Source: Carpediemonas membranifera BICM (taxonomy: Eukaryota; Protista; Fornicata). Taken from it: a DNA stretch of 64,000 bases. Of the stretch, positions 37,523 through 59,023 are shown in pieces. Positions within the stretch are counted from its first letter, which is position 1; each line of letters begins with the position of its first letter. Below the pieces are notes generated by a model. The model was not told where the DNA came from. It made no database searches and saw only the letters and a list, made by a program, of their open reading frames with translations. A program made the translations under genes and the position numbers. Location of the stretch: positions 289,647 through 353,646 of the forward strand of contig JAHDYR010000009.1 in assembly GCA_019828565.1 (NCBI GenBank). Reading direction: 5' to 3'.

Positions 37523-37778
37523 TGTGCAGTTTATGTAAAGTAGTTATCGGAACTGCAGTATCACAGATGAATTCATCTGACAACACTACGAAAAGCACCG
37601 GAGAGGTTAAGCTATCGATCCCTGCCATCGAGGCAGTGGAGAGGCTCGTGCTGGGCCGCGATCCCGTGGGCGTGGAGCCCCCGAAGCTTACCTGCCTCAA
37701 GGCCGCGCAGGTTGCGGCTTTCTTGCGCGCTTATGACGAGTATGTCGCAAGAAAGGGCGTGCGAACCCTCGTAGACTG
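37523..37778 (+). mobile_element. E6: 5' end of a + strand LTR retrotransposon (putative 43-bp LTR 37523-37565, palindrome 37564-37579, gag start 37567), inserted in E7 and interrupted by E5
   Basis: TGTG...CACA segment followed by GATGAATTCATCTG. The ORF PPKLTCLKAAQVAAFLRAYDEY resembles the E2 gag N-terminus (APILKGTSVAELVTFVEALQDY). Confidence 0.6.
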
Positions 37779-38317
37779 TGTGCCGTGCCTTTGGGGCGTG
37801 CTAGCAAAACCTGGTGAGGAAGTATTTAATAGATTGCGATACGGTGCCGCGGGCCAGCCGGGACCGTATCGTATCGGCTAAAAATAAATACTGATCGAGC
37901 CTAGAGTGGCATCAGCCATGACACTACCCCTCCCAGAGCGTCAGCTCGCATGTGCATTGGCATCTCTGGGCGCGTTGGGCTGTTACATGTTTTGTTGTTG
38001 GTTAGGCTAAAGTGCAGGCTAAGGTTTCGCAACGGGGGGCATACGAAGGTGGGGACAAAAAAAATGAACAGCAGGGCAATCCGTCTAGGCTTGTGTTGTA
38101 GTGCTGTGGTGACGTAGATGGTTCTTGGTTGGGCCTGTAGCTCGAGTGAGTGACGCTAGCGTCGTCGATGATGAGTGAGGTGAACTCCTAGAAACCTCGT
38201 GGAAGTTGAAGTAGATAGTTCTAGTAAAGGTACTGTATCTAGTTGCTTTGGCGTATAAAGCGCTGTGGATGGTACTTCATTTAGATTAAATACACACACT
38301 AAATACACATCAACTGA

Positions 38318-38790
38318 TTACGAAATCACAACACCTCCGTCTTCTCCAAAGAGCTTGCCGCGCAACTTGTGTGCGTCGATATACGACTCAACTTGTTCGT
38401 TTCCTCTCACATCCTCATCATAGCACTGATAAGTATCTTCTTCAGGCTCGTAACCGCTCCAGCGTAGTCTGAAAACGATGTTCCCGTCCTCATCGGTCGA
38501 ATGGCTCACTACTGATTCGACAACGTATAATTCATCATCATCATCAAACTTGGCGAGCTCAGATATCTCCTCCTCAGTTAAGAAGGATCGATGGAACCTC
38601 CTCAGACGGTGTACATGTGACACCAGCTCCGCCCTCCCTGAAAAGGCCTGTAAGGCGTATTGGTTGTTCGGAAGCGAGTCTTTCACCATGAATGGGCCTC
38701 GGTAATTCGGGAGCGTCTTGCTACGCGGACCCTTAGGTGGGCCAGCAGGACATAGTCGCCAGGCTTGAAGACATCAGGCTCTACTGAGGG
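38318..38790 (-). CDS. E1 integrase C-terminal fragment (GPF motif plus chromodomain)
   Basis: FKPGDYVLL (shifted frame), KTLPNYRGPF and YVVESVVSH...FRLRWSGYEPEEDTY. Confidence 0.8.
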
Positions 38791-39650
38791 GTAGTCCAAG
38801 GCAGAGGACTGGGTGGCTCTGACTCAATGAGTCGAGCGCGAGTATCCACAAGGACGCGAGCATCTTCGAGTCGTTCCTCGTTGGCGACCATGTCTGCCAG
38901 GATTTCATCGAAAGCAGACTTGCCTAAACGGGCAATCCGGGACCAATGGGCTTGTAGGGTCTTCGGCAAGGTGGCCTTGATAACAGAGGAGAGAGCCTTC
39001 TCGGAGTAGGAGTCTCGCATGCCTAGGATGCGGACGATGAGTGATACACGGTGCGCAAACTTCGCAAGGGCGATCGAGTTGGCGGTTGCTGAAGGCTTAG
39101 CGGCTTCCAAGAACTTGGAGAGCCAAGCCTCGACGATGAGATTGTCGTCGGGCAACACGGCCTGAGAGATAAGGGAATTCAGAGCTTCGTTCAGACTGTC
39201 CCGAGCTTGGGTGTAAGTGACCTCACTCTCCGGAGTGACGTAAGCCTCTTTGCCCTGGGCGAGCTTAAGGACGGCAGAGACCCTGGTGAATTGAGGCAGT
39301 AGGGAGATGGTCCCCAAATGAGGGAGCAACGAAGCGGCGATCGAAGCAACATTGGGATGCTTGATAAGGTGTGCGTCATAGTCGAGGATCAAGCGGAACC
39401 ACCCTTCCTTCGAGGAGGGGAGAGCGCAATGGAAAATCTGGCGTTCGATCGATCCCGGCTTGAAGTCGCAGGGGAAGAGCTTAAAGATAGTCTCGAAAGA
39501 CTCAAGGCATGAAGAATCAAGCGTGGAATCCGAATCAGGGACATCATGGGCACGAACATCGGGCTTCTTCGCGAGAGAACTCACGAGAGTGACCAGATTA
39601 CCTATAGTCTCTTCTAGTGCCGCTATACGAGCGTCATAATCGGACTGCAT
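38781..39650 (-). CDS. E1 gag-like protein
   Basis: 289-aa ORF starting 16 nt after the 5' LTR with an N-terminal coiled coil; the call is positional. Confidence 0.6.
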   Translation of the reverse strand: MQSDYDARIAALEETIGNLVTLVSSLAKKPDVRAHDVPDSDSTLDSSCLESFETIFKLFPCDFKPGSIERQIFHCALPSSKEGWFRLILDYDAHLIKHPNVASIAASLLPHLGTISLLPQFTRVSAVLKLAQGKEAYVTPESEVTYTQARDSLNEALNSLISQAVLPDDNLIVEAWLSKFLEAAKPSATANSIALAKFAHRVSLIVRILGMRDSYSEKALSSVIKATLPKTLQAHWSRIARLGKSAFDEILADMVANEERLEDARVLVDTRARLIESEPPSPLPWTTPQ

Positions 39651-39679
39651 AGCTCAAATTGATCAATTTGGCGTATAAA

Positions 39680-42600
39680 AATGAGTGGAATTGAAAACTC
39701 ACCACAGCGAGGGCAAGGCGAGACGAATGCCAACGACAGCAGGCCAGTATCCGAAGCAGCACCGCTTCCCGAAGGATGGGCCCCGTGTGACGATTATTCA
39801 CCGGACAAGCTTGAGATATTCCTCGCTAGGCGCCGGTACTTCTCCAACCCGCCAGCTGATGCCCTGCGAAACTTCACCGACAAAGCGCTGATAAGCCTCA
39901 GAGCCGCTGGCCTGATGAACGACATCTCTGACCTATTTGAGAATGTCGTTAACAATATCAGTCGCTCGAGAGCTCTTAGCGTGCAGGACAGGTTCGTGAA
40001 GGTACAAAAGATGCGCCCCATCCCCAGAGGCGCTCTCAGTACCGCTAACACAAGGTTCGTCACCGACCTTCTGACCGGTGGCGATCCTGCCCTCGACGAC
40101 CGCCAACGAGGCGACATGATGCTCCTTATGTGCGGGAAGCTCAAGTCTAAGACTGCCGCGAGCAGTCTATCGGCGCTCGTTCATGCCGAGATGCCCGAGG
40201 CTACGCAGTTCATCGACTCCCCTACGCTCCGCGCAGGCTAGGGACGAAGAGCTACTCACCGCCGAAAGGCAGACGAGCAAGCCCCTCCAGGCTGAGATCG
40301 AGAGCCTGAAGGCCAAGAACAAGGCGCTTGCGGCCAACCAAGTGGGCCAGCGGCGTCGTACGCGAGGAGGGAGGGGCGGTCGGAGCCGGCAGGCGAGTGG
40401 GAAGGATGTAAAGAGTCGTAAGTACTGTTCCTTTAATAGTCAAAGCGGGACTCAGACTCCCCCACCATCCCCCCGGGCTTCGAGCAGGTAACCCTCGCCC
40501 GCCTGACTCAGGTGGAGTCCGCCCGGAGGCCGGAGTCCACGCCCGCACCCGCGCCCATGCCCGCACCCGCGCCTGTGCCCACGCCTACGCACGCGCCCAC
40601 GCCCGCACTTACGCCCGCGGGAAACAATGGCGCGCCAGGAAGCCCAGCGGCAGAGGCACCAGCCTCTGCTCAGCGAGCACGGAGACCGGTCCGAGCGAGG
40701 AAGGTCAAGCTCCCGTACACCCCACCCTCGCCCCGCCGAAGAGCTCCGCGGGCGGTTGGCATCCCGGTCGCCCGGTTGACATCGAGGGCAGCAGAGGGCG
40801 ACCAGGCACACGCAGCCCGTGTCGAGCTTGGGGCGTTCCTGACCCCATCGCCCAGGCCAGACCTCCACCGCATGTCCCGCACATCCAGCCCAACGTCGGA
40901 TTACGAGTCCTCGTGGGGCGGCGAAGGTGAGGAGACAGACTCCGAGGCCACGGTGATAGACCAGAGCGCATCATCAGAGGACCCTGACGATGATACGGAG
41001 GAATATGAGGACCCCCAAGCCTCCCGGTCTGGTCCTGACGGAGAGGCACACACGGGCGGGAACCACACTGAAATGCCGGAGGAGCTTGAGTTAAGCCCCG
41101 ATGAAAGTGACAGCGGCGATGACGGCGGACAGGAGTATTACCCTACTGACGACGCCCCCTCAGAAACCGATGAGGTGAGCGTAACAGAGCCTGACGCTGC
41201 AGGCTCGGCCACCGAGGCCCCAACCTTCATCCTTGGCTCTGACGAAGACTACGAGTCCTTGTCGGGAGGCGGGGCAGAGGGGTCCAGCGATGACGAGCCC
41301 GACTTCACCTCCGCGACATGCCCCATACGCCTGCCGGGCGTACCAGACGCCGCAACCGGCAGGGACCTCCGACACCTGCTGGTGGCTGCGACGGCGGACC
41401 AGATTAGCAGATACTGCGGGTGCCAGGAGTTACCACGCATCTGCAGAGAATGCGGGATGGTCTTCCGCCATGGCGGCCACGCAATCTGGCGCCGGCACGT
41501 CAATGTGGATCAATGTGACGACAGCAGGCTCGCCAACCGCATCACAGCAGCGTCCATACAGCTTGAGATGGCGGCGAGAGTCGGACACCGAGCCCCACAT
41601 ATGGCCCAGACCCACCTGCCCCAGAGACCACGCGGCGTCGTCCCCCACAGCGAGCTCGCACCAGCAGGCACAGCGCTGGCCGGGAGATCCCTGGGTAGAG
41701 CACGCATGCTCGGGAGCATGAACCTGTCTGCAGACAGCAGGGCAGTCATCACCTCGAAATTGAGTCAGCTCAGAGCGTTCATGGCGGGACACCCACAGGA
41801 GGGCGTCGACCGCGCGATGGAGACGGTCGCAGTGCTCATCAGGTGCCTGCCACACAGCGGGAAGTTCGCTGCGGTCGGCTTCCGAAATGCCATCAGACGG
41901 GTAATCCGCAACATCCCTGCCACCCCCCGCACCGCCGCATCCCGGCAGAGGAGACAGGTTGAGAAGGCAGTGGACTCTTTCATGCTTGGACAGGTCGGAA
42001 AATCACGGAAGCTTCTGGCACCACGCCATGAGTCGGCATGGTCGGAGGACCAAATAGTGGCGGAGGTCCACAGGCTCTTCCCGGCAGACCGTGCTGATGA
42101 GATCGTACCCCTCCCACGCACAACGGTGGCTCGAGCGGAGTCCCTGAAATGGGCCAGCCCACCGCCCACACTACCGAGGGACCTGCCGACCCGAGAATGC
42201 GAGGAGATCATGACCGGCCTGGACGGCACCAAAGCGGCGGGACTGTCAGGATGGTCGAACAAACACATCTTACAGCTCCTGGGCCGGCATCTCGCCACCG
42301 ACACGAGGAGGAACGCCCGACGTCTGAGGCCAGCCGACTCCAACAAATCGGTAGTCAGCGCAATGACCGAGATTGTCTCCTGCATCGTGAGGGGTGAGTC
42401 GTCCTGCAGACCGTTGACGCAGGCATACCTCTCGATGCTGCCAAAGCCGAACGGTAGCCTGAGGCCAATAGGGGTGAACGAACCGTTCTACGTGATCGCA
42501 GGCAAATACCTCGCTAAGCTTGCTCTCGGGCACCTGAAGCCAGACGACAGCGGGGACGACCCGGCCGGGGCACTGCCGGACTGGCTGCCGGAACAATATG

Positions 42601-44655
42601 GCCTGGGCGGCCGGAGCGACGTGGAGAAACTGATCGACCGTGTCGACAAGGCATACCGGGCTGGGAAGTATATCGTCATAGCGGACTTCACGAACGCCTT
42701 CAACGAAGCGAACCGTCACACGATGAAGGCCATGGTTCATGAGTACGCGCCGGCCCTTACTGACTTTGTCGACCAGTTCTACGACGACCCGCGCCTCTAC
42801 TACGAGACATACGGCGCGGCTGGCACAACCGCGCGGTGGGTGGACGTCAAACGCGGGACCATCCAAGGAGACGCTCTTGGCCCGCTGCTGTTCTCCTTCG
42901 TCATGCGCTGCATACTCGACGAGCTCACCGAGGCGGCTCCAAATGAACGCTTTGCGTACCTGGATGATGTCGCCAGTATCCACAGCACGGCTGGCGACGC
43001 CACGGCTGAGATCGCCACGCTCACGCGCATCGCGTCGAAGTATGGTCTCCGCCTGAACATGGCGAAGACGGTGATCCTCGCCCACCCGGACGTACACGAC
43101 GCAGGACACCCATTCGTACATGCGTGGGAATACCTCGGGGTGACCATCGGCCCGACCACGAGCCGCGTTACAGCGGTGCAGGTTACGGCTGAGAAGGTTA
43201 TTGACGAGCTCAGCTGGCTGTGTGGAATTATCGAGCAGTCGACGGGGCACGCGAAAAACCAGGTGTCCTGGATGTGTCTGCACATCATCCGCAAATGCAT
43301 CAGCGCGGACCTGAATTTCATGTTCAGGACGAACGCACCGAATGTAGCCATCGCTGAGAGGTTAGAAGCCAGCCTCATCGAGGTGGCGAGGGTCATAGCG
43401 AACTCCCCAGCCGGCTGGGAGAGCGCGAGGTTAGATGCACTGTGGCAGAAGCCGAGTGACAACGGCTGGGGCTTCAGGCACCCACTCGACCACTGGGTGG
43501 CAGCATACCTTGGCGCCAGGAGTGATCTCATACGCATGGGCGGCCCTGGATACACCCCTGTCTGCGACACAGTCCCGCCCATCCCCCACATGGCAGGCTC
43601 GGACCCGGAACTCATGATGCCTAAGGCGGACCGGCCGCAGTGCGTTTTCTCCGAGCACATATACCGCGCCCGTCACAGGACGTCGAGGATTCCGTACGGC
43701 GAACTGCTGGCGGCCTGCCTCAACACGGCGGTAGACGACCAGTACGCGACAGCACGACCGGTGATAGCAGCCTATAGGGCGGTCCTCGGGGTTGGCATGA
43801 TCTCGGGGCTCCCCAGCCCAGTGGCACGGCGCCTCCAGGACGGGAACACGGCACTCTTCTGCCCCTTCTGCGGCAAAGGTGTAACTAGAGGCACGTGGGA
43901 AGACCATGCCATGCTCTGTAGCGCGAAGCGCTGGTTCCCTCAGCGGAAGAGGAACCTTTTGCACCGCCACGACTTGGTGAAACACGGAATCGTACAGCTG
44001 CTTAGCACGACCTCGACAGAGGTCCTTCATGAGGAACCCCTTGATGATGGGCTCCTAAAGGACGAGAAGTACCGAGCAAAGGTTGCATACGACGAAATGG
44101 AACGCCTGCAGAAAGCAAACAGGCCTATTCCGCAAGCAATCGCTGATCAGGCAAGTAAGATCACGCAGGCACGCGCAGATATCCTGATTAATGAGCCTCT
44201 GCTCCGGAACGGCCGTCCTCTAGTGATTGAGGTCACAGTCGGCAAGTCTGACTCGGACTCATTCATCCAGAAGAAGAAGGACCAGTACGCCGACTACAAT
44301 GTTGACGTCATCGTCGTCGCACTCACTCCAACCGGCAGCCACATCGAGTCAGCCGCCAGGAGTCTGGTTGAAATCGGACAGGAAATCTGCACGATCACTG
44401 GCGCAGAATGCTTTACTGACCGCCGAGCTCGGTCGGTTCTCGCGATCGCACTGATGGGCTGGCTACTGAAGAAGTCATTCGAGCTCCGCAAGGCACACCG
44501 CCTGCTCCATCTGGCCACGTCCGTGATCAATCCTCCACATCTCCCCCCACCCCCTCCCACCGCCGCCATCCAGCGGAGTCAGCGTGGAGGCGCTTCGGCG
44601 CCCCGCAATGGCTGAATAATGGTATGTACATGTTTACATACAATCGAGTAAATTC
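39680..44655 (+). mobile_element. Non-LTR retrotransposon with restriction-like endonuclease (CRE-like), inserted in the E1 5' LTR; TSD about ATAAA
   Basis: Comparison with the intact E1 3' LTR places the insertion at GCGT-ATAAA-GCGC; ATAAA occurs at 39675-39679 and 44656-44660. Confidence 0.9.
39681..44615 (+). CDS. RT-RLE polyprotein (main ORF 40512-44615; upstream ORFs 39681-40241 and 40183-40491 probably join via 1-nt homopolymer indels)
   Basis: C2H2-like CRECG..H; RT motifs LPKPNGSLRPIG, QYG, DFTNAFN, GTIQGDALGPLLF, YLDD and YLGV; CCHC CPFC..HAMLC; RHD, RADILI, IEVTV and KKKDQY. Confidence 0.9.
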
Positions 44656-45778
44656 ATAAAGCGCTGTGGATGGTACTTCATTTAGATTAAATACACACAC
44701 TAAATACACATCAACTGATTACGAAATCACAACAGTTGCGTTGTTGTTCTCGTGATCCGAAGGGTATTTGCTGAGATATTCGACGTTTTGTCAAATTTTG
44801 CTGAGAAAATGGGAAGATGAGGTCGCTATGAGGTTGGTGATGGAGATAGGGGAAATGTGATCGTGGATTTGAGAAGTAATTACTTTGTTGTACGGTTCTC
44901 CATGACCTTTTCCGCGTCAAAGGGCGTATAGCTTGTGGGGTGATGATCGTTCGATTCTGGAAATGAGCTCGTCATGCGTCAGAGTCGATTCACGATGAGA
45001 GCAGTAAGAGACCGGGGCATACGAGCTGATTGCCGGTCCTGGACCGGTTGAGAGCCCCTTTGGGGGGTATTTTGACCAAGTCGAAAAGCTTCGAAATGGT
45101 TCAATGACGGTGGTGTAGTGCGGTAATGTGGCTTAGAAACCGTTGTTGAGGGTGAAACGTCTTGATTAAATGACATTTGTTGTGTTTGTCTGCTTCTGGA
45201 TGGTTCTTCAGCTCCAGAAATAAAGTGTTGTGTGAGTGAGAATAAACGAGGGCCTTTGGGGCCGTTTCATGAGTGATTTGTGATTGTTTTGGCGGCTTTA
45301 TGTACACTTACGCTTGCCAGCCTTTCTTTTTGATGTATCTGTTGATCTTTGGTGCCTCTGAGGGGTGGGACTTGAGATATGAGTCAAGGGCCTCGAGACG
45401 TGAGTTTGCGTTGTTGAGCGGGATGTCACTGTCCTCGGCCGTCTCGTAGCCGAGCCAGTGGACTCGCAGGTTGTAACCGCGGCTCGTCTTGATCACATCC
45501 ACAATGCTTTCGACAATGTACTCGTCCTCGCCCTCGGCTTGGAGTTGGAGTAGCTCGGCGTCGCTGAGCGTGCCGCGTATGAATGGCTTCAGGCGATGAG
45601 TGGCGACTGTCATGGCGGCCTCAGGGTCAGATAGGGCCTCAATCGTCGTGGTGTTCGAGACAGTGCCCGGGCCACGTACCTTGAAGGGGCCGCGGTAAGG
45701 CCGTTGGAGCTTGCTGAACTTGATTCGTTTGAGCAGGACGAGGGAGCCAGCCTGGGGTGCCCAGTGTCCCGTGGGTGC

Positions 45779-48700
45779 TGTGGTCATCCTACGGCAACTA
45801 ACGAGTGTTAAACCATTTAGAGCTGAAACTGAGTCTTATCCTGCGGGTGCAGGATAAGTACCCGATGATAAATAGATGAGCGGATGACACTGCCCCTCCA
45901 AGACCCGATAATGGCTTGTGACAGGGGAGGGTCTTGACAACTAAATGGATGTGCTGGATATCAGTCCTTGTGTGCTTAGTAGAATCAGAGTTCAGGCTGA
46001 ACTCTCACGTGCCTCATGCGTCAAGGCGATAAGATTTGCCGCGGTGTGTTCCACGCTTCGGCATTCGACCTAAGTGAGGTCAGGGACATGTGGCTTGCTC
46101 TTGTGAGGAAGAAAAACCCGGTGGGAAAAGACTCTCAACCACTGCCCCTCCACGGCCGCATCAGTGAAATAACGCGCCGTATCCAGGTAATGTCACGGGT
46201 TGACATTTGTGACACGATGCTTGATCGGCGATCAGAGGATAAATGTCACGTCAGGTGCTGCGACTGTGCCTAGCTGCGAAGCACTGTGATACTGTGATAC
46301 TATGTTAGATGACGCGACGGCACTCCGTCGACTTGAAAGACACTCAGCCTCGTCTCAAGTGAAAAGCTTAAGATGACTGCAGCCCTCTCGCATTGCTCTG
46401 CGGTACAGGGACTTATCGAAGCTAATCCAAGCTTCATGAAGACAACTTGGCATCATACCGTCGCCACCAAGTGAGAGCTTGGGGCCGGTTTGACCGTCCA
46501 GCGGACTGGGACCGGGTCGACTCGACTGTTGCTAGTCGGTATAAACACTATAGAGCCTGACAGGCTCACCAACCATTCGCATGATGGTACAATTAACACA
46601 CAACCGTTTCAACGGAATGACGTGTGATCGTGGGACTTGCTCCATGGCCTACTGACATAGTGAGGCCATGTTCTATCACATTATGCCTGCCGTGTACCAG
46701 GACTTATTTGATCAGGTCGCAGCGAACGCTTCTCGACCTCTCCACCAACGAGCATCATATATGACAAGGCTCACAACTGGCTGAGACAACTACTGGACAA
46801 CGAGCACCCGTGCGGGTCTGGCTCTAACTCGTCCGTAGCGTGACCTTTGCACCGTCGCCGCCAAGGGAAAGCTTGAGGCCGGATATGTATAACGAGACTC
46901 GTGATATCTCACTGACGTCTCTCGCTTTGGTGTACATGCGCCCGTCGGCACGGCATCCAAGACCAAAACCTTCTGACAAGCTCCATCAGTCTCAGATCTG
47001 CGCGTCGATGAGGATTGGTTGGCCGGCCGCACCTACACCATACACAGAATCATCAACCCTTCTGCAAGTCAGGGACTACTCGCTCTCCTCCCGTCGGATT
47101 CGAACCTTCGAGCAGCCGTCACACCGCTATTACCGAGCGGTGCCCTCGCTGGACTACTGCCAGATGCGCAATATAAACTACGGGATCCCTGTGTGAAAGA
47201 AACTACTAGTGGCTACTGCTCACTAGACTCGGTAACGACCGAACGGTCAGACTACCGTCATGCTATAGCTTACCCGTCCATGCAACCCACCGTCAGCCTA
47301 CTCGCCGCAGCGTTGTTCAGCGACCTGGTGGCTACAGGACACGTTCTTATGCCAGAGGACCGGACACAGCTACTGCTGGCTTTCTCATGGTGTTCGATGA
47401 ACGATGAAGGAGCGACCTCCATATGCTAAACTCACTCTAGACTAGACATACTAGACTAGACTCAATTGAGACTTGAATTCTTTGCGGTATACCTTGGCAC
47501 TAGTGCATAGTGATGACTTGAGTGTCCTGGGACAAGATACAAGCGTTTCGGTCCGACCATTTCGCGATGGGACGGCTCCATGTCGATGTGCAAGCTGCCG
47601 TGCGAACCATTGCTACGGCTCGGGTGTACGAGGAGAGATCATGCCGATCGTGCATGATGGACTTGCGACACAGGTAAGGCTTCACAGGGCCTGTCTGGGC
47701 AGACCCTGAACAGGAGGTTTGGATCTCCAAACATGTGTTGTGGGGTGGTACTCTTGTCAACCCACAGTGTCAAATGTTCTACGTGTGCGCTTGACACGCC
47801 TCTAGGCACACTGCCGGGCACCACCACACGGTGTTACGTCGATAATACTCTTACGGTCGGGGCTACTGGCACCGTAGACCTGGGCTGTGATGTGTCTGAG
47901 TCTGGCAACGAAGCCTCATTGTTGCTCAGGTATGTCTGCCAGGGAGAACTGGCTAGCTCACGCGATCATGTAGGGGCGACACGGGTATATCGTACATCTA
48001 GTACGACTAGCAGGGGATGTATCGCGTCAATGTCAGTGTCACTACGACACTGCTCTAAGTTACGGAGTTAGTAAGCCGTGGGAAAGACCACACTGGCCCT
48101 TTTGTGTGTGGGTCTGAGTCGTGCAGGAAGCAAGCAACGCGGGCTGGACCCAGCTGGGGTAGCACGACCCACTACAACAGCTACCTTCTGAGCGCACACG
48201 ACATGCGTCGCTCGCCTTCTAGCAGCATGGGGTAAGCTCATGCATCGATCGTACGCGCTTATGTGCCGTTAAAGACAACTGTCGATCGTGTTCGACAGGG
48301 TGTGCGGACATGGTGACCACCATGGCACGATCTCGGACAATGAATAGGTGCCTATGCCATCATGGCATGACGGCGTTAAGGACACCAGTCGATGGTAGGC
48401 TCGACCACCTTCGGTCGGGCTGAAGCTGTCGTTGAGCAATCTCGTTCAGGCAACGTATCCATGGGGGGAAGAAAGGGCCTCTCCAAAAAGGGTACTGTGC
48501 TACATTCTGTGGGAGAAATCAATATGCATTGGCTGTTATAGATCTAAGTCACAACCCCATGGGGTTGATAAGCGGTAAGGCAGACGGTCTGTCTGACTTG
48601 GCACAGCAAGGTTGACAACTAGGTTGACTGGCCTGTCGGGATAAAGCTCATCTCGGTGTACATTAGACAGTTACTAGGCGTGGGGCGTCGTCTACCTCGC

Positions 48701-50910
48701 CCTCGGCTATGTTATGCTTGCGTAGCTTAAGCAAGACATCAGACCTCTACTCTAAGGCATGTGTCGTTAGGCCTCGCCTTGTAGAATGGACAGGCTCACA
48801 CTGTCCTCGCACCGGGCTGACACTAGGGCAGACCTTGCCCTGGTCTTGGCAAATGTAGTCAGCGCGGCTCTTGTATTCGGTAGATCAGTTTGACACCTGG
48901 CAGCAGAGCCGCCTTGGTTCATTGGGGGAAGCTAGTCAGTCAGCGACGGTAGAGGGACCGTCGCTATATGTGTACAGCTTCAACAGGGAGTTGACAGTCA
49001 TCACTCCTGCCTGCCGGCTCGTAACACCTTCAGGCACTACTGTGTGCTGAGACTGGGCATGATCTAATAGGTCTACTGCTGACCCTAGAATAGAGGAGGA
49101 ATACGGTTGTGGAGGTCGTGATGTGGCACGAGTCTCCCTCGGCACACGATCGTGCACGATCTTGATGGTACTGTTGATACACGAGCTTCTACACTCGCGT
49201 GAAATGACAATCTTGGAGCCCTCATAGAACAAGTTACTGGATGCAGGTCCTCGCCTAGGCCAGGCATGCGAGCTCGGACTGGGGCTCGCCCTGAGGTGCC
49301 TTACACTCGGCCTTGTTACGGCAGAATCGGGAGAGTTCCCACCAACCACAATACGTTGGGCTCAAAATGCAAAGTAGATGGTGGTAAACGCATTATGGCA
49401 TTCAACGCTCGGCTAGCGTTGCGGTGTAGCATGGCTTCGATGTGTGGATGTCGTATGATGATGGCATGCGCTCTCCTGCAGCACCCTAGATGCTGCGGTG
49501 TCGCGGCGAACAGCGCTACGTGCCGCCGTTCGAGGATCAGGTGATCAGAGGATTCATCGTCGCACCTTGCGATGATGTTATAGCTAATGTAGTGTAGGAT
49601 TTGCAGCGCGCGGACTCCATGGGCGCGACCACACAGCGGTGAAGATGCTTGAAGCCTGTGACGGAGTTACGCGAGAGGGGTTACGCTTGGACAACCTGTA
49701 CGAGCAGTCTAGTGAAAGAACTTGTGATCGGTAGCTATAGTTGCTGCTGGTAGGTATGGGTTAAAGAAGGCACAATGAAGCTACTGTTGATGATGTGGAC
49801 AACTAATGATGGTGGGTACCGGCCGATACAGGCTCTGTCCTCTTGATGATCAGGGGTCACACTCAGAGTGAGCCCCTCAGGGCCATTGCTGATCGAGCTG
49901 ATCGAACAATACAAAAAGCGTGGGTCAGCTCGGGCCTGTCTGGCTCCGGTTGACGTGTGGATTATAGGCCGAAGAGGTCTTCTGTGGGTTCCTCAATCGT
50001 CATTTGAATGAGATCATCATTGGAGTTATCAGTTGATGAAGGTGGGGTCGACTCTGGCCGCCAGGGCTCAGGTCATTAGATGATCGCCGAGTCTCCTGCG
50101 CCTGCGGCGCAGGGCCCATAACATCTCTTTGTCGTCTTCAGGCTTGATGTGATCAATTGATGATGATGCGGGGGCGGGTCCGGCCTGCTGAAGGGTCGTC
50201 ATGATCCATACGCTCTGCGGCGCGGGTCTATAGCGACGTTTGTGGAGGTAGAGGTTGACCGACTGTTCGGGAGTTGTGGCGACGAAAGACGTCCGTCGAC
50301 GCCCGGTCGTGAGAGCTGGTATGGCGCCAAATGAGTATGAAAACCCCTTAGGCATCGACCGCTGGTGTCGATGTATCAATTAATCGCGTTCCGATTCGCA
50401 GTGATGCTCGGAGCCGTCGGAGCTTACTCAGTGTAGCTGGCTCCATGAACTGACAAGAGAAAGCGGTATGGTGCCGTAATCTGGATAGAAAATAAGTTGT
50501 TTTGGCCGTGGAATATCGATTCCAAACGGCGTTTCTACCAAAACGTTCTATCTGGCTCGTTCTGAGCACATAAAATGCTCGCGACTGGTTCATGGCCTTT
50601 GGAGGCCCTAGCGCGGAATACTCTACTAATATGCAACCTGCTGTCGCTACTGGACATGTTGTGCGCGGTCTGAGACATGTTTTGACCAACCAAGACACGA
50701 CAAGAATTCGTTTGTGTTTGAGAAGACTGATGTTGATTATATCACTCGCTAGCACCGCAGGACGTTTGATTCTCATCTCCCCGGGAGAAATGATATCATT
50801 GTGGTCATCCTACGGCAACTAACGAGTGTTAAACCATTTAGAGCTGAAACTGAGTCTTATCCTGCGGGTGCAGGATAAGTACCCGATGATAAATAGATGA
50901 GCGGATGACA
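45779..50910 (-). mobile_element. E3: 5.1-kb non-autonomous LTR element (LARD-like), identical 111-bp LTRs, 4-bp TSD GTGC, no pol
   Basis: LTRs at 45779-45889 and 50800-50910 (TG..CA); TSD at 45775-45778 and 50911-50914; PPT TTGGAGGGGCAG at 45890-45901; no internal ORF over ~140 aa. Confidence 0.92.
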
Positions 50911-52583
50911 GTGCCTTGCGCTTGGCTGCTGTGGTGTATTGAGCGATGTTGTCGCGTACCGCACGCAGTATGCCCGTCAAATCCTCTCTTCTGGCCTCAT
51001 AGTGCGTGTGTTCGAGGTGGGGGAAAAGGATATTGAGTGGAGTGCGTCCCGTCGTCGATGATGCGGTGTTGTTGATGATGAGCTCGACTTGGGGAAGTAG
51101 ATCAACCCAGTCGCCGTGGTTGAGCAGTGGTGTGAGGTGCTTGACGATCTCTGCGTTCATTCGCTCTACTATGCCATTGGCTTGCGGCCTGTATGGAACT
51201 GAGAAGCGGTGGTTGAGCGTGAGCCTCTTCGTCAACTCGGCAACGAGCTTATTGTCATACTGCGGGCCGTGATCGGTCTGGATGGCGCTCGGGACGCCAA
51301 AACGGCCGCAGAATTGGTAAATGCTCTTCGCGGCACTCGCAGCATCCGTAGTGTGCCGTGCACTCCCGGGTCATTGCTGTCAGGGTGGGGTCCTTGTGCT
51401 TAGCTGCACACTCGCTACAGGCGGCGAACGTGGCTTTTCTTATGGTCTTCTGTACCTCCTCTACCCAGATGGCGGTGAGGTTGTCGGTCTTCGTTGTACG
51501 GGCTCGTGCCGCAGTACTGGCAGAGCTTGTGTTCGCCGCGCGGCGAGCATCGGAATCGGACAGAACGGTTCGTTGTAGGTCCTCGAAAGTGTCAAAAAGA
51601 GTGGTTGGGCGCCACTGGGCGCGAAGTTTTTCTGTTGTCTCGGGGGACAATGTAGCCTTATGGCTAGGGAAAGATTGTTTAATATAAGAAAACCCATGAT
51701 GTGGTGAATATGGTCAATACTATATAAATCTATGAAATGGTAATCCTATGTAACATTGGGTAAGACCCACTGCACTGCCCCTCCAGTGCCTGTAAGGCAC
51801 GACCTCAAGCAACGCATATATATGGTCGGCAATAGCCGATGAGGATTAGTGAAGTGACAACCGCTTCGAACGTACGAGAGCCACCAAGTACGATCGAAAC
51901 AGTCTACTCTATTGGCGGTAGAGTAGGCTATGTCTGCCCTTCAGGCCTTGATCTACGAGCTTAGCCAGTATTATGTAAAGATATGGTTGATACTATTATT
52001 CGAATCTGTATCTATAAAAATCTTGTGGTACCACTATATAAACGCGCGCGCTAAGTTAGGTATAGGGTATCTTACATGTCCCTGCCCCTCCACGGCCGGA
52101 ATACGGCCGTGATTGTGGCGGTTTGGTTCGGCTGTGCATTTTATGGCACAATGAACCGCGGTTTCGAAAGTTTCACTATACGCGGTATGCAAAGCGCTAG
52201 CCAGCGTATAGTTGTCAAAAATGGGGTTTTCAGCCCTCAACGACGACTTCGTTGGCGAGTTCTGGACGTTTTTCTTTTTCGGTGCCGAATGAAGGTGCTG
52301 CTCTGCGCTACGTGTGTCCTTCATGAATAACAACATCAATACTTAGTAAAAGCCTTCGTTGCTGCACTGTTTGTGGGATATTGAGGAGTATCTTCACGAT
52401 TCTCCTCAAGGCTTCATGAGCGTCATCGAATCGACCTCCTGCGCCCAGGCTCCGGTCATGATCATGGCTGCTATGGTCTGCGGGTTAGTCAGCTAGGTTG
52501 CAGTAGTTCCCATAAAAGTACGATAATTACGTCAATGCATGTAAATGCTGCTTTGAAGGATTTCAAAGCAGCCGTTTGAGGAT

Positions 52584-53525
52584 ATGGAGAATTATACCGC
52601 CGCAATGAAGGCTATAATCGAGGAACTAAGCGATGACGATGACATTGCCGCCCTCAATCGCGTCTTCCGCCACGTTATTCGCAAGCGTGCTCGTCGACGC
52701 GTTGGATCTACCGCCAACTCCGACAACACGACTAATCAGTCCTCCATTGATGCTTCAACAACCGCTACGGGCTCCACAGTCAACGATCAGGAGCGCCAGC
52801 CCGATTCCAGCGTGGTTCCGGCAACCGTCGTCGGCGATTCGCGTCCGTCTCGCCGTGCTAGAGGCAAGCGCCGTATCGGCGTCCGTGATCGAGTTCTCCC
52901 GCCGGCAGTCACGGGCGCGGACGTGGTGTTCGAGCCTCCCCGCATTGATCGCGCCACACGGCTGCGGGGTGAGCTCGATCACGTCATCTCGACGGTCACG
53001 GCGACGTTATCGACATTCTCATCGCATCTAGAGCTGTCAGTGCAGCCGTTCCTCGATGTGTTGATGAGCGGTGCGCTTAACCAGGCATCGCTGACCTCCG
53101 TTCAGCGCCTCGACGGTGGCGTCATCGCTCTGTCTGGGGCAGTCGATGACTACTATCTGCTTGTCGGCTTCCGCAAGTACTTCGATCTTGGCTCCGGTGT
53201 CAGCGACCGGGAGATCATGAACCAGGTATTCAACGGTCGCCGTGCCGGCGATATCCGCCGGGAGGTCCTGGATGAGGCGGCACGCCTTCTTGCCGTTGGG
53301 GTCGACACGGCACGTAGCCACGTCCGCCGGCTCTATCTTCTTACGCATCATGTTTCGTATTATGCAGTGCTACAGCACGCGATCTGGAGCCGGGTGCTGC
53401 AGGGCCGGCAGTGCCTGTATCGATTTGCCAATGACTGCTACGCCCTTGCCTGCGCCGAGGAGCTGCCGACCCTCAGCCTCCCCCCCGGTAGGTACCCCGG
53501 TTTCTTCGTCTTACACAGGATATGA
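52584..53525 (+). CDS. E2 antisense accessory ORF A (313 aa, unknown function)
   Basis: ATG-initiated long ORF between pol and the 3' LTR, on the opposite strand and not overlapping pol. Confidence 0.7.
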   Translation: MENYTAAMKAIIEELSDDDDIAALNRVFRHVIRKRARRRVGSTANSDNTTNQSSIDASTTATGSTVNDQERQPDSSVVPATVVGDSRPSRRARGKRRIGVRDRVLPPAVTGADVVFEPPRIDRATRLRGELDHVISTVTATLSTFSSHLELSVQPFLDVLMSGALNQASLTSVQRLDGGVIALSGAVDDYYLLVGFRKYFDLGSGVSDREIMNQVFNGRRAGDIRREVLDEAARLLAVGVDTARSHVRRLYLLTHHVSYYAVLQHAIWSRVLQGRQCLYRFANDCYALACAEELPTLSLPPGRYPGFFVLHRI

Positions 53526-53824
53526 CCCGCTTTCAGGTCTACGAGCGCGACCGGTATTATCGCGTGCTGGCTGTGCGTGGTCACTGGTGGCTGTTCGTTG
53601 AGCAGGCCTACCGTGGTCGCGCTGGCTCCTTCTTGCTCCTTGTCGCCTACGACGGGTTCCCTGAAGCAAGTCTGACGCCGGTTAACGCAGACCTTGTCCG
53701 CGTGGCTGTGGTCAACCAGTACCTCAGGGCTCATTCCGAGCTCTGGGACGTTCTGCCTGAGTCCCTGCAGGTAGAGTTGGAAGAAGTGGTGACCAGTGAC
53801 GAGGAGTCTGCCGGTGACGAGTAA
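53522..53824 (+). CDS. E2 antisense accessory ORF B (100 aa, divergent stand-alone chromodomain-like protein with acidic tail)
   Basis: YRVLAVRGH..FLLLVAYDGFPEASLTPVNADLVRVAVVNQYLRAH parallels the E5 chromodomain YIVESIVDV..LRVHWLGYETAEDSDIPLNNANSRLEALDSYLKSH; ATGA overlap with ORF A. Confidence 0.6.
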   Translation: MTRFQVYERDRYYRVLAVRGHWWLFVEQAYRGRAGSFLLLVAYDGFPEASLTPVNADLVRVAVVNQYLRAHSELWDVLPESLQVELEEVVTSDEESAGDE

Positions 53825-53887
53825 ATGTTCTGATGATCTTGGTTAGCGCCTTGATAGTCCGTTATTTACACGGCTATGTACAAGGGC

Positions 53888-56800
53888 TATCCGTCTGTAT
53901 TGTTCGCCAGGAAGATGTCGAGAGCTGCGCAGTCCTTAACGTTCTTATATGGTTCCCACGTGGCTTCTTCGTCCTCAAATCCGGCCCAGTGCACGAGGTA
54001 CTTCTTCTGCGACATGGTACCTGACCCGCGTGCTGCTGAATGCGGTCGACCAACCACTCGTCCCTGCTAGTTGCAGCGAGTTGCTGGATCTGGTCGTCAG
54101 TTAGTGTACCGGGGTTGAACCTTCGCACTCGTGCGGCATCGACCTTGATGGTCTTACCATTCGTGGGTGACTCTGCCATGTCTTGGACTTCATATGCCAC
54201 GGTGACGCCTGATTGCTTGATGCTCTTAACGCGCCTCATCGGGCCTCTCCACCCTGGTGATAGTTTGTCAGGTGGGCGAGAGGGGTACTTGACCAAGACG
54301 TAACGACTCAGGATCTCCGTACGCGACGAGACGGCCTTCGACCACGCGTCCTCCTTCATCGCTTGGATGCGAGCCTTCGCCAGCTGAATTGCCGCGTCGG
54401 CGGCTGCCCGGTGTGATTGCTTGGCGCTCGCTGACGCTTGCTTGGTAACGTATATTGAGCTAGGCACGGTGAGGTTATATCCCAGGACGATCTCAGCCGG
54501 TGATAGGCGGGTTGGGACTCGCGGCGTGGCGTTGATGATAAAGCTCGCGACAGGCAGGTGATGTATCCAGTTAGAGTCTCTTATGTGGAACTTGCGTGCC
54601 TTCAAGATGCGTAACACCTCCTTGTTGGCTCGCTCCACCATCCCGTTTGACTGTGGATGGTGGGCCGTAGTGATGTGCGTATCAAAGCCCAACTCCTTGG
54701 ACAACCGTTGGAATAGCTTGTTGTTAAACTCTGGCCCTCCATCGGACTGTAACACCTCTGGGCACCCGAAGCGCAGTACCCAGTTGTTGACGAATGCGTC
54801 AGCTGCTGCTTCGGCTGTGGTCCCGGAGACGGCAACCAGCTCGGTCCACCGTGAGCACATGTCGACCATGACCGTAATGTGCGTCATACCGTCCCGCGTT
54901 GGGAATGGCCCCATAGTGTCGATCGCTACGCGTTTGAACGGGGTCTCTACAGCCGTATGTAACCCGGCCACAGTCTGCTCGGGTGGTCGTTCTAGCACTT
55001 GGCACGTGGGGCAATGAGAGATGAACTCGTCCACAGCTGAGCGGGATACGCTCAACCCGTCGGCTCTCAGTCTGTCGATTGTCTGTCTTCTCGAGAAATG
55101 AGCGCCTGCCATCTCGTGTGCCTTCTTAATCTGATCAGTGGTCGCCTGGGAGCGTACGGTGAAAACTCTCGATAGTCCGTCGGCTCCGGCGTTGTCTAAA
55201 CCTGCAACGTGCTCAATACCGAAGTCTAAGTCGGACAGGGTGTCAGCCCATCGCTTGACCTTGGCGTTAACGCTCCGGAACATGAACAGGAGGTTCCTGT
55301 GGTCGGTCAGGATTGTGAAATGGCCCCAACTGAGGAACTTGCGCCAGCGTTGTACGGCAGCTATAATGGCGTACGCCTCCTTCTCACTGGTAGACCATCT
55401 CGACTGCACCTCATTAAAGGCCTTACTCATATAGCATACTGGCCTACCCTCTTGGAGGAGTACTGCACCGTAGCCGAGCCCTGAGGCATCGGTCATAATA
55501 GTGTGCTCCTTAGTCGCGTCGAAGATGGCGAGTGCGTCCGCCGATGTGAGAGCATCCTTGATCTTCTTCAGCGCTGCGTCCTGTTCAGGCTGGCCGATAG
55601 GCCTGCGCCCGGCCATTGCCTCAGTCAAGGGGAGGGCGATCTCGGCGAAACGGTCCACGTGATCTCTGAAATAGTTCAGAAAGCCTACTAAGCCCTGCAT
55701 CCCACGGACGCTCTTGGGCAACTGGAGCTCTGCAATGTCGGCTACCCGGTCGGGGGGCGATGTGTTTCTGCCCCTCGGAGATTACCCAACCTAGGAACTC
55801 GACCTCGGCACGGCCAAACTGGCACTTCTCCCTATTGAGCTGTAACTTTGTCTCGCGTGCGCGAAGGAGGACCTTGCGGAGATTCTGGAGATATTCCTCT
55901 TCGCTTGCCCCGAAGATGATGATGTCGTCAATGTATATATAACAGGCTGTGCCGACCAGCTTCCCCGGAAGGCGGACTCCATAGCCCGCTGGAAATGGGC
56001 TCCAGCATTGCGTAGCCCAAAGGGCATCCGACAGTACTCGTACTGCCCCAGAGCCGTAGTAAATGCGGTGTACTGGCGGCAGCGCTCGGTCAGCTCGACT
56101 TGGTGGTAACCGGCGGAGAGGTCGAGGGTTGCGAAGACCTTCTTCCCCGCTAGCTGGGAGATAACCTCGTCAATACGAGGTATGGGGGTAGTTGAAAGGT
56201 TCGGTGATGTCGTTAATTTGTCTGAAGTCAACTACGAATCGGGACTTACCCCCTTTCTTGGGTACTGTCATCGCGGGCGAAGCGTAAGGCGATTGACAGG
56301 CACGGATAAATCTCTTCGCCAGGAGAGCGTCAATGTGCTCCTTGACGACGGCTACCTTCGCCGGGGGGATGTAGTATGGTCGCGCGTTCACGACCCTGTC
56401 ACTCTTCAGGATCAAGTCGTACGGTTCGAGCTTGCTTGGCTCGTTGCGATCTTCGAACACTGCGCTGAACTCCTTGAGAACCTTGGCCTGTGTATCGCTC
56501 GTAGTGGGGTTCAACTGGTAGACGGCAGCGTCGAACTTGGCGGGCGACGGAATGTCCAGCTCGTCGCTACCCTCCTTGTTCCACTCAGCCTGAGGGAGTA
56601 TACCCAACTCAACCATATGGGGGTACCCTAGGATCAGGTCGAAGTCGGTGTCGAGTAGAAGTAGCTCGGCGTTAAATGTACAAGTGCGCGGGGTGAACGA
56701 TGATGGTTGCAGCTTAATCGTAGCGTTGACTCGACCCTGTGACTGTTTCTCGCCGCCTGCTGTTGCGACACGCTCCTGCGTGGTGGAGATGACCTCGAGC

Positions 56801-57822
56801 TTGGCTGCGTGGCGAGGGTGGATGCTTGACACGTTAGCTCCCGAGTCTAATAACGCTGTCAGCTTCTGCTTGCCTACTGAAACCGGAACGAGTGGTAGGT
56901 TGATCTTGGACTTGGACTGATCTGCACTGATAGAGAGAGAATATTGCGGAGATTTATCCCGACAATATCTCTCCAGGTGACCAGTCTTCTTGCAGATCGA
57001 GCACGTGTGCTTCGGCTTGGGGCACTTGTGCCATGCGTGCTTGCCGCCGCAGTTCCAGCAGGTGTAGTCGCGCTTCTTGTCAGTGCTACTGGGATGGGGC
57101 TTACGCTCTGACTTATCCCGGTTCAGCGTCTTGTTGCTTCCCTCCTCAGACGGCAGCGGCTGGCGATAAGGATGGCCGTTGCGGCCTGCTCTCTTTCTGT
57201 TACCGCTAGGATGGCCGCCTGTCGGGTGAATGCTCTTGGGGTGCTTCTGTCCGTCTCCTAGGTACGCTTCTCTCAGCTCTTCGCCGTCCCGCAGCTCGGT
57301 GCTAATGGCGAGTACCTGAGGCATGGCATCACTCAGAGTGGAATCTTCGATCAACTCTTGAATGCGGTACATAGTTCTGCCTGTTCCCTGCTTGAAGCAG
57401 CGGGCGTACGTCTTACACAGTGTCTCCTGTGATGACTCGGGTTGCAGAATAGCCAGCAATGTCTGAAAGCGCTTGTTGATGCGTACCACCTCGCTAGGCG
57501 TGAAGGATGTGGCGTTCAAGCGGAAGTATTCAAGCCTTGCTACCTCGTGGCGTGGTCTAAAGGCCTTGCCGAGACGCTTGACACAAGCGATGTCTTGTTC
57601 GCGCCGGCGTGTAGTCTTGGTCTTGATGAGCGCCACGGGAGGATCGTTGTCGTCCGTGCCGAGTACTCCGTCAACGTAGTCACGGACGCAGCTGTCTATT
57701 AGGCGGTCTGAGCGCTGTTTTCCGCCGAGTGCTCGATAATCTTGGAGCGCTTCCACGAACGTGACTAATTCAGCCACGGACGTGCCCTTTAGTATCGGCG
57801 CTTTGGTCTTCCCGTATACCAT
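53888..57822 (-). CDS. E2 Gag-PR-RT-RNaseH-IN-chromodomain polyprotein (several small frameshifts)
   Basis: Two CCHC knuckles, LLDSGA protease, LDLSAGYHQ, MPFGL, YIDD (~55925-55936), TDASG/EKEAYA/TDHRNL RNase H, HHCC plus D,D(35)E integrase, WRGP, and chromodomain YLVHWAGFEDEEATWEP. Confidence 0.93.
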
Positions 57823-59023
57823 GTTGGTGGAATTAGTACTAATGTAGCCTTATGGCTAGGGAAAGATTGTTTAATATAAGAAAACCCATGATGTGGTGAA
57901 TATGGTCAATACTATATAAATCTATGAAATGGTAATCCTATGTAACATTGGGTAAGACCCACTGCAACAATGCCCTAAAGAACGAAATTGGATTCTTCTC
58001 GTGGGGCATCGCCGAGAGGTACTCCTGGAGTGCTCTCTCGACGGCGAACGGGGTGTCAATTGTAAGAGTCTTCATTTGAATCGGCAGTATCGATACTGTG
58101 CCGTGCTAGGGCCCAGAAATATGATAAAGACTGTTTTACGAATTCCGCAGGTTAAGGGCACAGTAGTGTGTGCCGGGAATAGTGAGACGTGCTTGCTGAA
58201 GCCGTCTACTGCTGCAATGATATATTTTGACCCGTCAGCCGACTCAGGAAGTGAAGAAAGAAAGAAAATCTCGTGCCTGGTATCGGGCCCCGGTTACTTA
58301 GGCTGATCTCCCTTATTACTGGAGCCGAGTTCCCCGGGGCGCTGCCTCCTCCCTGCGATTGAACTTGTCAGCTGCGTCCAACGAGCGATTCGGTGCTACT
58401 GCTTCCGCTCACTCCCGATTTCACTTCCCCCCATAGGCCTTCGCCATCTCCGTGCGCTGAGCGCTTTCCTGTCTCCCTGTAAACCCGGCAGCTTCCAGGG
58501 AGCCTGGGGGTCTGTCCTCGGTGCTTCCACAGGCAGGTTTGTCCTGCAAGACCTTCTCTATAGCACTCCCTGATTCCCTGCAGTCCCTACGGGGTCGTTC
58601 AAGCATGGCACCCTCTCCTCTTTCCAGATTCCCTGTTCAGTGCCCCCACGACCCTGTTAAGTGGCCTACCCGTGGGCGGGGAAAGCAACTAAGTCCCTCT
58701 CATCTACCCCCTGTTAGGCGGCGTGGGTTAGGGCTAACACAGACTCTAGATCTGCAAGGCCTAGTACCCCTTATGATAGTTCTCTTGTGCTACACTTCCC
58801 AGCGTCCCTCTATCGTTCACAAGGGCGGCGGGGACGTCATGTCCCCCCGTATCCCATGCTCAGTCCCTGCAGTTTCCTTAGGTTCACCGCGAGTGGTGCA
58901 ACCATCCAATTGATGGGTTTCCTCTGTCCCTGGCCCTGCCCTCTCCCTGGGAAACATGGGGGTCTCCCCTTGATCCCAGAGTCTATGCTTCCCTGCCCCC
59001 TTTCTGGATGTGGTGTTCCTTAT

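Follow-up and report, generated by a model that had tools for sequence, protein, structure and literature searches.

Family-specific palindromes at the 5' LTR boundary of chromovirus-type retrotransposons from Carpediemonas membranifera: candidate sites of tRNA-independent priming

Introduction

The stretch of DNA analyzed here, referred to as the window in the following, comprises 64,000 nt from the free-living metamonad Carpediemonas membranifera BICM (assembly GCA_019828565.1, contig JAHDYR010000009.1, positions 289,647-353,646). From about 37 to 64 kb, it consists of retroelements nested by insertion into one another, among them Ty3/gypsy retrotransposons of the chromovirus type, which have long terminal repeats (LTRs). 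Our subject is a perfect palindrome at the inner edge of their 5' LTRs.

The supply of the first primer of reverse transcription is a defining step of every retroelement, and to our knowledge only a few solutions to it exist: the 3' end of a tRNA, a tRNA half and the cis self-primer of Tf1. In the general scheme of LTR retroelements, the 3' boundary of U5 is the place where the 3' end of the minus-strand primer pairs, and working primer-binding sites measure 8 nt in Ty3, 11 nt in Tf1 and 18 nt in retroviruses. An earlier note on the window described five LTR retrotransposon families, which it took to be unrelated, each with a different palindrome where a tRNA-complementary site would be expected, and proposed a tRNA-independent, dimer-based priming system. 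All five palindromes are perfect and lie at the coordinates it gave. We find the observation to be real, as well as broader and stronger than first seen, albeit with corrections, and the interpretation to be partly supported.

Elements of the window

A self-comparison of the window yielded LTR pairs for only three elements, X, E3 and E2, all of which lie on the minus strand. Their features are the following:

38242-38246 and 44735-44739: target-site duplication of X, GCAAC
38247-38333, minus strand: 3' LTR of X, TGTTGTG...CGCCAAA
38334-38347, minus strand: polypurine tract of X, GGAGAAGACGGAGG
38334-39654, minus strand: interior of X in the window copy, with a gag open reading frame (ORF; 38781-39650) and a chromodomain remnant (38435-38737)
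39655-39670, minus strand: palindrome of X, CAAATTGATCAATTTG, covering the last 4 nt of the 5' LTR; gag ATG 4 nt further
39667-39679, minus strand: split 5' LTR of X, proximal 13 nt (L003 16089-16946 corresponds to window 39679-38822)
44656-44734, minus strand: split 5' LTR of X, distal part
45775-45778 and 50911-50914: target-site duplication of E3, GTGC (plus strand)
45779-45889, minus strand: 3' LTR of E3
45890-45899, minus strand: polypurine tract of E3, GGAGGGGCAG
50789-50800, minus strand: palindrome of E3, AATGATATCATT, its first A being the final LTR base
50800-50910, minus strand: 5' LTR of E3, TGTCATC...GACCACA
51647-51650 and 57967-57970: target-site duplication of E2, ACAA (plus strand)
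51651-51774, minus strand: 3' LTR of E2
51775-51784, minus strand: polypurine tract of E2, GGAGGGGCAG
53874-57822, minus strand: coding region of E2, with gag-protease (56170-57822), reverse transcriptase (RT) and RNase H-integrase (53874-55721)
57832-57843, minus strand: palindrome of E2, ATTAGTACTAAT, its first A being the final LTR base; gag ATG 9 nt further
57843-57966, minus strand: 5' LTR of E2, TGCAGTG...GGCTACA

Six further loci of the C. membranifera genome were fetched via annotated retroelement proteins. LTR pairs that are 99-100% identical and accompanied by target-site duplications of 4-5 bp were found for X, E2, E3, the E9 family, L002a and L004a. These chromovirus-type elements have short LTRs (85-124 bp), and a polypurine tract (GGAGGGGCAG, GGAGAAGACGGAGG, GGGGGGGAAG and others) abuts each 3' LTR. 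As judged from Pfam matches in E2 and from tblastn maps, the gene order is gag-protease-RT-RNase H-integrase, with the integrase carrying a C-terminal chromodomain. The protein P0125, for instance, contains the domains zf-CCHC, protease, RVT_1, RNase H, rve and Chromo, and its nearest solved proteins are the Ty3 Gag-Pol (7q5b, 1.6e-78) and the Ty3 RT (4ol8, 4e-64). Rather than being unrelated, the palindrome-bearing families are, by their sequences, distinct families within one chromovirus-like clade. Repeats of 956-1229 bp in the loci L001, L005 and L006 were considered as LTRs and rejected, as they derive from the duplication of parts of nested elements.

The 5' LTR of X is broken at a 5-bp duplication, ATAAA (39675-39679 and 44656-44660), by an insertion of 4976 bp:

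39680-44655, plus strand: non-LTR, R2-like retrotransposon ('E1' of the earlier note), with ORF1 (39681-40241, 186 aa) and ORF2 (40512-44615, 1367 aa)

The RT of ORF2 has its best match in the Bombyx R2 reverse transcriptase (8gh6); the insertion has no LTRs, no endonuclease domain recognized by Pfam and no poly(A) tail at its 3' end. The earlier note had counted it as an LTR family and had assigned the palindrome at 39655-39670 to it. In X, the 5' LTR is followed by TTGATCAATTTG. An intact copy of X in another contig (L003 16015-20534; 4.5 kb, 87-bp LTR, target-site duplication ATCAC) encodes a full protease-RT-RNase H-integrase-chromodomain polyprotein; its alignment to the window assigns the palindrome at 39655-39670 to X, on the minus strand, and reveals that some 3 kb of the interior are deleted in the window copy. 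'E1' is, judging by its sequence, outside the palindrome system. An apparent head-to-head pair of a minus-strand gag and a plus-strand ORF flanking the palindrome was rejected, given that the proteins are unrelated and that the arrangement results from a non-LTR insertion into the LTR of X.

In E2, TTAGTACTAAT directly follows the 5' LTR and, together with the last A of the LTR, gives the palindrome ATTAGTACTAAT. Within E2, 5 kb of the window (51651-56660) are 99.6% identical to contig JAHDYR010000019.1 of the same assembly; an exact-protein look-up of its gag-protease returned no record. In E3, whose LTRs are 99% identical, the corresponding sequence is ATGATATCATT. Its 4.9-kb interior (45890-50799) has no ORF of at least 150 aa and contains a further palindromic site on the opposite strand (48552-48567), so that E3 is either a non-autonomous element or itself a nest.

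Position of the palindromes

Perfect palindromes of at least 12 nt are only mildly more frequent in the window than expected (24 vs 17.9 in second-order Markov shuffles), and enrichment was therefore tested by position. In six families the LTR ends were set independently, by LTR pair, target-site duplication and polypurine tract, and all six have a perfect palindrome of 10-16 nt there, starting 4 nt before the LTR end in X, 1 nt before it in E2, E3, the E9 family and L004a, and 0 nt before it in L002a. In a seventh family, E12, whose gag is 50% identical to that of E2 and whose LTR start is fixed by two copies, the palindrome ATTAACGTTAAT is found at the same place. The chance of a palindrome of at least 10 nt starting within a stretch of 6 nt is about 0.6% per junction, and no such palindrome was found at the control junctions, i.e. 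the polypurine-tract side of metagenome LTR pairs.

At nearly all sites, the palindrome opens with the A that terminates the LTR and closes with a T, which means that the pairing takes in the last U5 nucleotide. Palindromes that include this final A follow the 5' LTR in E2, E3, E9, E11, E12, L004a and at most metagenome sites. Across families, there are more than 20 different palindrome sequences. In most C. membranifera families the gag ATG lies 0-14 nt past the palindrome; for the ATGs that the earlier note had placed at a distance of 1-23 nt, we measured 0-12 nt.

Distribution across the clade

With an RNase H-integrase profile, we obtained 80 related metagenome loci (26-51% identical). The motif sought in them was a strict one, namely a perfect palindrome of at least 10 nt that begins with A and is preceded by [CT]AC. 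There are 62 sense-strand matches in 50 of these loci, compared with 5 on the antisense strand and a mean of 6.7 in shuffles, and 193 kb of C. membranifera DNA yield 25 matches on both strands vs 2.1 in shuffles. The sense-strand matches fall almost entirely at two places, the second of which lies about 2.2-2.7 kb downstream, at the end of the 3' LTR; there, multi-copy assemblies pass from the LTR straight back into the interior. A palindrome is located at most 55 nt upstream of the putative gag ATG in 13 of 36 loci, compared with 6.8% of control ATGs.

In a FastTree phylogeny of the RNase H-integrase region, which is rough and was built without reference elements, 57 motif-bearing rows are scattered over all subclades of an ingroup of 95 rows, and most of the 38 motif-less rows come from truncated contigs or nearly duplicate a row that has the motif. 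On these sequences, the palindrome trait is clade-wide. A Closterium relative outside the ingroup (local support 87) has LTRs of 770 bp and a site of the tRNA-Met type, ...TTACA T TGGTATTCAGAGC. For a Rhodosporidiobolus relative (L087), no LTR pair was found within the flanks.

Most of the additional sites were found through the palindrome motif itself, and a covariation count over all of them would be circular. Two comparisons bear on selection for symmetry. Around the site, a diverged E3-like copy (L004 22322-22530) shares no more than about 55-60% identity with E3, yet a block of 22 nt, TGACCACAATGATATCATTTCT, is invariant. When the palindromes of E2 (ATTAGTACTAAT), E12 (ATTAACGTTAAT) and L007 (AGTATTAATACT) are aligned, both partners have changed at 3 of the 6 pairs, and the following TCC is kept. 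These sequences support the earlier note's view that symmetry and position are kept while the sequence changes.

Identical palindromes also occur in elements with different LTRs, namely AAGTAATTACTT (window 44874-44885 and L002 3100-3111), AGTAATATTACT (L011 and L027) and AGTAATTACT (L004 16074-16083 and L038), which, together with the AGTA...TACT flavor of many sites, suggests a sequence preference that goes further than symmetry, and possible cross-pairing between families.

Comparison with known priming modes

The earlier note had held that neither the tRNA 3'-end layout nor that of Tf1/sushi applies, and we agree on both counts. The TGG that would pair with a tRNA 3' end begins none of the 28 sites, relatives included, and the window contains neither tRNA genes nor other Rfam families. 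The comparison with host tRNAs covered one, a tRNA-His, the sole tRNA found in the six C. membranifera loci, which has at most 5 nt of complementarity to the sites. Among 12 elements, the longest complementarity between LTR and site is 4-7 nt, which is no better than with shuffled LTRs; cis self-priming of the Tf1/sushi type, which requires such a complement, was rejected.

Not only the LTRs, as the earlier note had stated, but the remainder of the elements, too, lack a further copy of the palindrome: none was found anywhere in eight complete elements, even when as many as 2 mismatches were tolerated, and a second arm like the CHSeq2 of the fungal GalEa elements (see below) was thus rejected. 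A weak match (8 of 9 nt) lies about 50 nt downstream of the palindrome in E3 alone.

For 21 of the 28 palindromes, the predicted hairpin energy of the palindrome alone is 0 kcal/mol, whereas the palindrome:palindrome duplexes of 10-16 bp have a mean of -12.7 kcal/mol (28 tested). For 24 of 28 leaders, cofold predicts that the homodimer of lowest energy is held together by the two palindromes. Head-to-head inverted duplications centered on the palindromes, as they would be expected from palindrome-mediated self-priming of DNA, were searched for and not found. Lastly, Giardia-like poly(A) signals (AGTAAAC, CGTAAAC, TGTAAAT) lie 16-21 nt before the LTR end in the E9 family (L003 9500-9583), L007 and E11 (L001 around 17735-17804). 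U5 may therefore be almost absent, with R nearly reaching the palindrome.

Proposed mechanism and alternatives

As the U5 boundary coincides with the first base of the palindrome, the palindrome is itself the candidate primer-binding site; its variation from family to family rules out one host RNA as the primer of them all; and since the element has no other sequence that is complementary to the palindrome, the partner would be the same sequence on another molecule. This set of statements is in our view probably correct, and within it tRNA independence is well supported. We put a probability of about 0.45 on the fuller reading, according to which the whole short-LTR chromovirus-type clade has in common a priming system that does without tRNA and is supplied by the element, with the palindrome as its minus-strand primer-binding site.

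As to how such a primer could be supplied, we infer from the sequences that dimer-based priming is the best-fitting model. Two co-packaged genomic RNAs would pair in antiparallel orientation through their palindromes, in a duplex whose 10-16 bp are within the range of working primer-binding sites. One strand would then receive a 3'-OH at the palindrome's 3' edge, with the element's own RNase H as the most plausible enzyme, as in Tf1, and the cut end would be extended over U5-R of the partner RNA. If one ribonucleotide of the primer stayed in place, comparable to tRNA removal in human immunodeficiency virus type 1 (HIV-1), this would explain the usual overlap of 1 nt between palindrome and LTR. 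The palindrome duplex would double as dimer linkage. More tentatively, and with less confidence than in the reading above, we consider that this may be a third mode of minus-strand priming, an obligate-dimer (trans) self-priming in which the palindrome pairs with that of the co-packaged RNA and the partner is cut into a primer, ancestral to a large, mostly protist clade of chromoviruses and convergent in the fungal GalEa Copia elements.

Several points weigh against this reading. A simple rule of cutting at the edge and keeping one ribonucleotide does not hold for X, where the overlap is 4 nt, or for L002a, where it is 0 nt. A palindromic primer-binding site should permit strong-stop DNA to anneal unproductively to itself, yet the corresponding head-to-head products were not found. 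The second strand transfer could not succeed with both partners cut, and the model thus needs an asymmetry for which it has no explanation. Many sites and families are of an AGTA...TACT flavor, which hints at a sequence preference beyond pure symmetry. Finally, the transcript ends, the RNA dimers, the cut and the primer-DNA junction are proposals only, drawn from sequence.

Other explanations have to be set beside this one. The palindrome could be a dimer-initiation or packaging signal only, like the dimer initiation site (DIS) of retroviruses or the palindrome in the primer-binding site of mouse mammary tumor virus (MMTV), while a different primer, e.g. a host RNA fragment, pairs with a few bases at the LTR edge. 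Palindromes in or near primer-binding sites do dimerize RNA in MMTV and Ty1 (PMC8096270, PMC6844567), the leader between LTR and ATG is so short that signals must overlap, and the AGTA start of many families could pair with a common primer ending in ...UACU. Against this, the first halves of the palindromes vary (AGT, AAT, ATT, AAG, AGA, CAA), so that no single host primer fits; the LTR/interior boundary, where the 3' end of a primer pairs, is the first base of the palindrome; TGG is missing from all 28 sites; and the few nucleotides before the gag ATG leave no room for a separate primer-binding site in most C. membranifera families. We regard this explanation as unlikely. Priming in trans by a short element-derived RNA, either a premature R-U5-palindrome transcript or a product of double-stranded RNA nucleases, that anneals to the full-length RNA is an alternative which all of the sequence evidence for dimer-based priming fits equally well, and one in which RT-RNase H need not cut an RNA:RNA duplex. 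It would, however, require a host process that makes precise 3' ends at the palindrome edge across many hosts, and it appears distinctly unlikely to us.

It is quite improbable that the palindrome is instead a double-stranded DNA site for a dimeric protein, such as a host factor or the element's integrase, or a promoter or initiator element. Such a site would be in keeping with short AT-rich palindromes with restriction-site-like cores, and a location just upstream of the gag ATG would suit an initiator where 5' untranslated regions are very short; but more than 20 sequences would demand as many co-evolving proteins, the exact register on the last U5 base would be left unexplained, the absence of the site from the 3' LTR side means that it is no integrase end signal, and the elements would have no primer-binding site whatsoever. 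The earlier note's own alternative, an intramolecular snap-back in which the palindrome of a single RNA forms a hairpin that is cut into a cis primer, has been weakened to the point of being very improbable, since intermolecular pairing is thermodynamically favored and the hairpin is not. While it is formally possible for the GC-richer palindromes of 16 nt (-5.7 kcal/mol in E6 and -7.2 kcal/mol for the site at 48552), most palindromes gain nothing from folding, a loop-less palindrome cut at its center would leave no template 5' of the primer end, and there is no second arm downstream as in GalEa. Least of all do we expect that the site pairs with a host tRNA, tRNA half or tRNA fragment, which seems hardly conceivable. 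Priming by half-tRNAs does occur in Copia lineages (PMC6317226), but here the missing TGG, the short complementarity to the one tRNA compared and the lack of tRNAs and other Rfam families in the window speak against it, as does the palindrome itself, which is perfect, changes from family to family and so cannot correspond to a stretch of tRNA that is conserved.

Relation to known systems

In Ty3, the primer is tRNA-iMet, which binds a bipartite primer-binding site and also bridges the two RNAs of the dimer. The present elements share with Ty3 the gene order, the polypurine tract, target-site duplications of 4-5 bp and their closest solved proteins, but carry a palindrome without TGG instead of such a site. 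Tf1 cuts the RNA:RNA duplex at its primer-binding site with RNase H; in this duplex, the first 11 nt of the transcript, which are located in the LTR, pair in cis with a non-palindromic site. Like Tf1/sushi elements (Tcn1, TAR), the present elements are of the chromovirus type, have no tRNA primer-binding site and would take their primer from their own RNA; unlike in Tf1, no part of their LTR is complementary to the site, so that only the corresponding site of another molecule is left as a pairing partner. The HIV-1 DIS, the MMTV primer-binding-site palindrome and the Ty1 PAL, lastly, occur in elements that still prime with a tRNA, on a tRNA-complementary site that is separate or overlapping, and these palindromes are usually 6 nt long and sit in a hairpin loop. 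The palindromes described here resemble them in that a self-complementary 5' leader is predicted to pair two genomic RNAs, and differ in that no tRNA primer-binding site accompanies them.

From the literature, the lineages of Tcn1 and Tf1/sushi are predicted cis self-primers (PMC6317226), and the dimerization palindrome of MMTV lies within the region of its primer-binding site (PMC8096270). The Skipper chromoviruses of dictyostelids also have neither TGG nor a complement in the LTR (PMC5006619), and share this with the present elements, but have a degenerate polypyrimidine stretch where those have a palindrome.

The closest parallel, and one that limits the novelty implied in the earlier note, comes from the fungal GalEa elements of the Ty1/Copia superfamily. 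These have no tRNA site, but a conserved sequence of 9 nt directly behind the 5' LTR that, read together with the LTR's final A, forms a palindrome (ACTGATCAGT, ACTAATTAGT) (Donnart et al., 2017; PMC5445492). A second, nearly complementary arm of 9 nt (CHSeq2) lies 12-41 nt downstream and forms a hairpin with the first, two variants accounting for 85% of families; no complement was found in U5 or the LTR, and the authors proposed that this Conserved Hairpin Site replaces the primer-binding site, without a fitting model (PMC5445492). The present elements, too, lack a tRNA site, and at most of their sites the palindrome takes in the last A of the 5' LTR. In contrast to GalEa, which are Copia elements of Pezizomycotina, they are Ty3/gypsy elements of the chromovirus type from a metamonad and environmental eukaryotes, with the integrase after RNase H; they have no second arm, and their palindromes comprise more than 20 sequences of 10-16 nt as opposed to the nearly fixed sequences of GalEa. 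In a full-text literature search we found no paper on a 'palindromic PBS' (primer-binding site) and none on LTR elements of C. membranifera. A palindrome in place of the primer-binding site therefore has a published analog in the Copia superfamily, and none for Ty3/gypsy in the literature searched.

A family-specific palindrome exactly at the start of DNA synthesis, throughout a clade, would imply an element-supplied primer of an undescribed kind. If this is true, RNA dimerization would be tied directly to priming, and the unexplained GalEa observation of 2017 would gain a mechanism-level hypothesis. On the practical side, annotation tools that seek tRNA-complementary sites will miss or mis-orient such elements, and the signature ...[CT]ACA + palindrome offers a means of finding them in protist genomes and metagenomes.

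Further sites and neighboring sequence

The remaining two families of the earlier note, E6 and E4, differ from X, E3 and E2 in that their LTRs are unpaired; neither the window nor any of the fetched loci yielded a second copy. Both LTRs end in the clade-typical ...CACA, with the palindrome next. These elements and three additional sites are located as follows:

32312-32323, plus strand: additional site CATAAATTTATG, after ...GCACATCA; outside the range of the earlier note
37474-37565, plus strand: putative 5' LTR of E6, TGTGGTG...TATCACA, its start read from the sequence
37564-37579, plus strand: palindrome of E6, CAGATGAATTCATCTG, preceded by ...GTATCACA; the ATG of a gag-like ORF lies inside the palindrome
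44874-44885, minus strand: additional site AAGTAATTACTT, directly after ...GTACAACA; the same palindrome is found in family L002a
48552-48567, plus strand: additional site CAACCCCATGGGGTTG, inside E3, preceded by ...AAGTCA; a probable 5' end of a further nested element
58085-58098, minus strand: palindrome of E4, CAGTATCGATACTG, preceded by ...GCACGGCACA; gag ATG 9 nt further
58097-58162, minus strand: putative 5' LTR of E4, whose end fits the clade motif and whose start is provisional

From the start proposed earlier for E6 (37523), its LTR would span only 43 nt; judging from the sequence, it probably starts at 37474, with TGTGGTG. The gag of E4 is interrupted by E2 at 57966/57967.

The window copies of X (38334-39654) and E4 (50915-51650 and 57967-58084) are both internally deleted, with the start of gag joined to integrase or chromodomain remnants. 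The LTRs of X are still 100% identical, and such deleted copies may have been mobilized recently.

E2, including its copy in L001, has about 2.1 kb (51775-53873) between the integrase and the 3' LTR. This part contains an antisense ORF of 313 aa (52584-53525) without a Pfam family and, at about 51791-52078, a second polypurine tract and after it an LTR-like segment that includes a TATA-like box, which looks like a captured or tandem LTR.

All three copies of the E9 family have an LTR-end-like sequence about 290 nt before their 3' LTR (L001 13017-13028, L003 15159-15168 and L006 12463-12472). It consists of a TATA-like ...TTATACA and the palindrome GGAGCTCC, followed by an ATG, and resembles what remains of the 5' end of a different element, or else an internal start.

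The element nest is adjoined by an intron-less host gene with a SNARE domain (36077-36907). Further away, from 2912 to about 8000, the window contains a long array of periodic repeats of 39, 24 and 15 nt (159 overlapping matches of 300 nt; A-rich, with a GC content of about 60%), which is probably a repetitive coding region. At the other end, two ORFs of 531 and 511 aa, both without a Pfam match, lie on the minus strand at 60346-63478, downstream of an RNase H/integrase zinc-finger fragment (63475-63954), and tandem repeats of 36 nt are found at 60629-60790.

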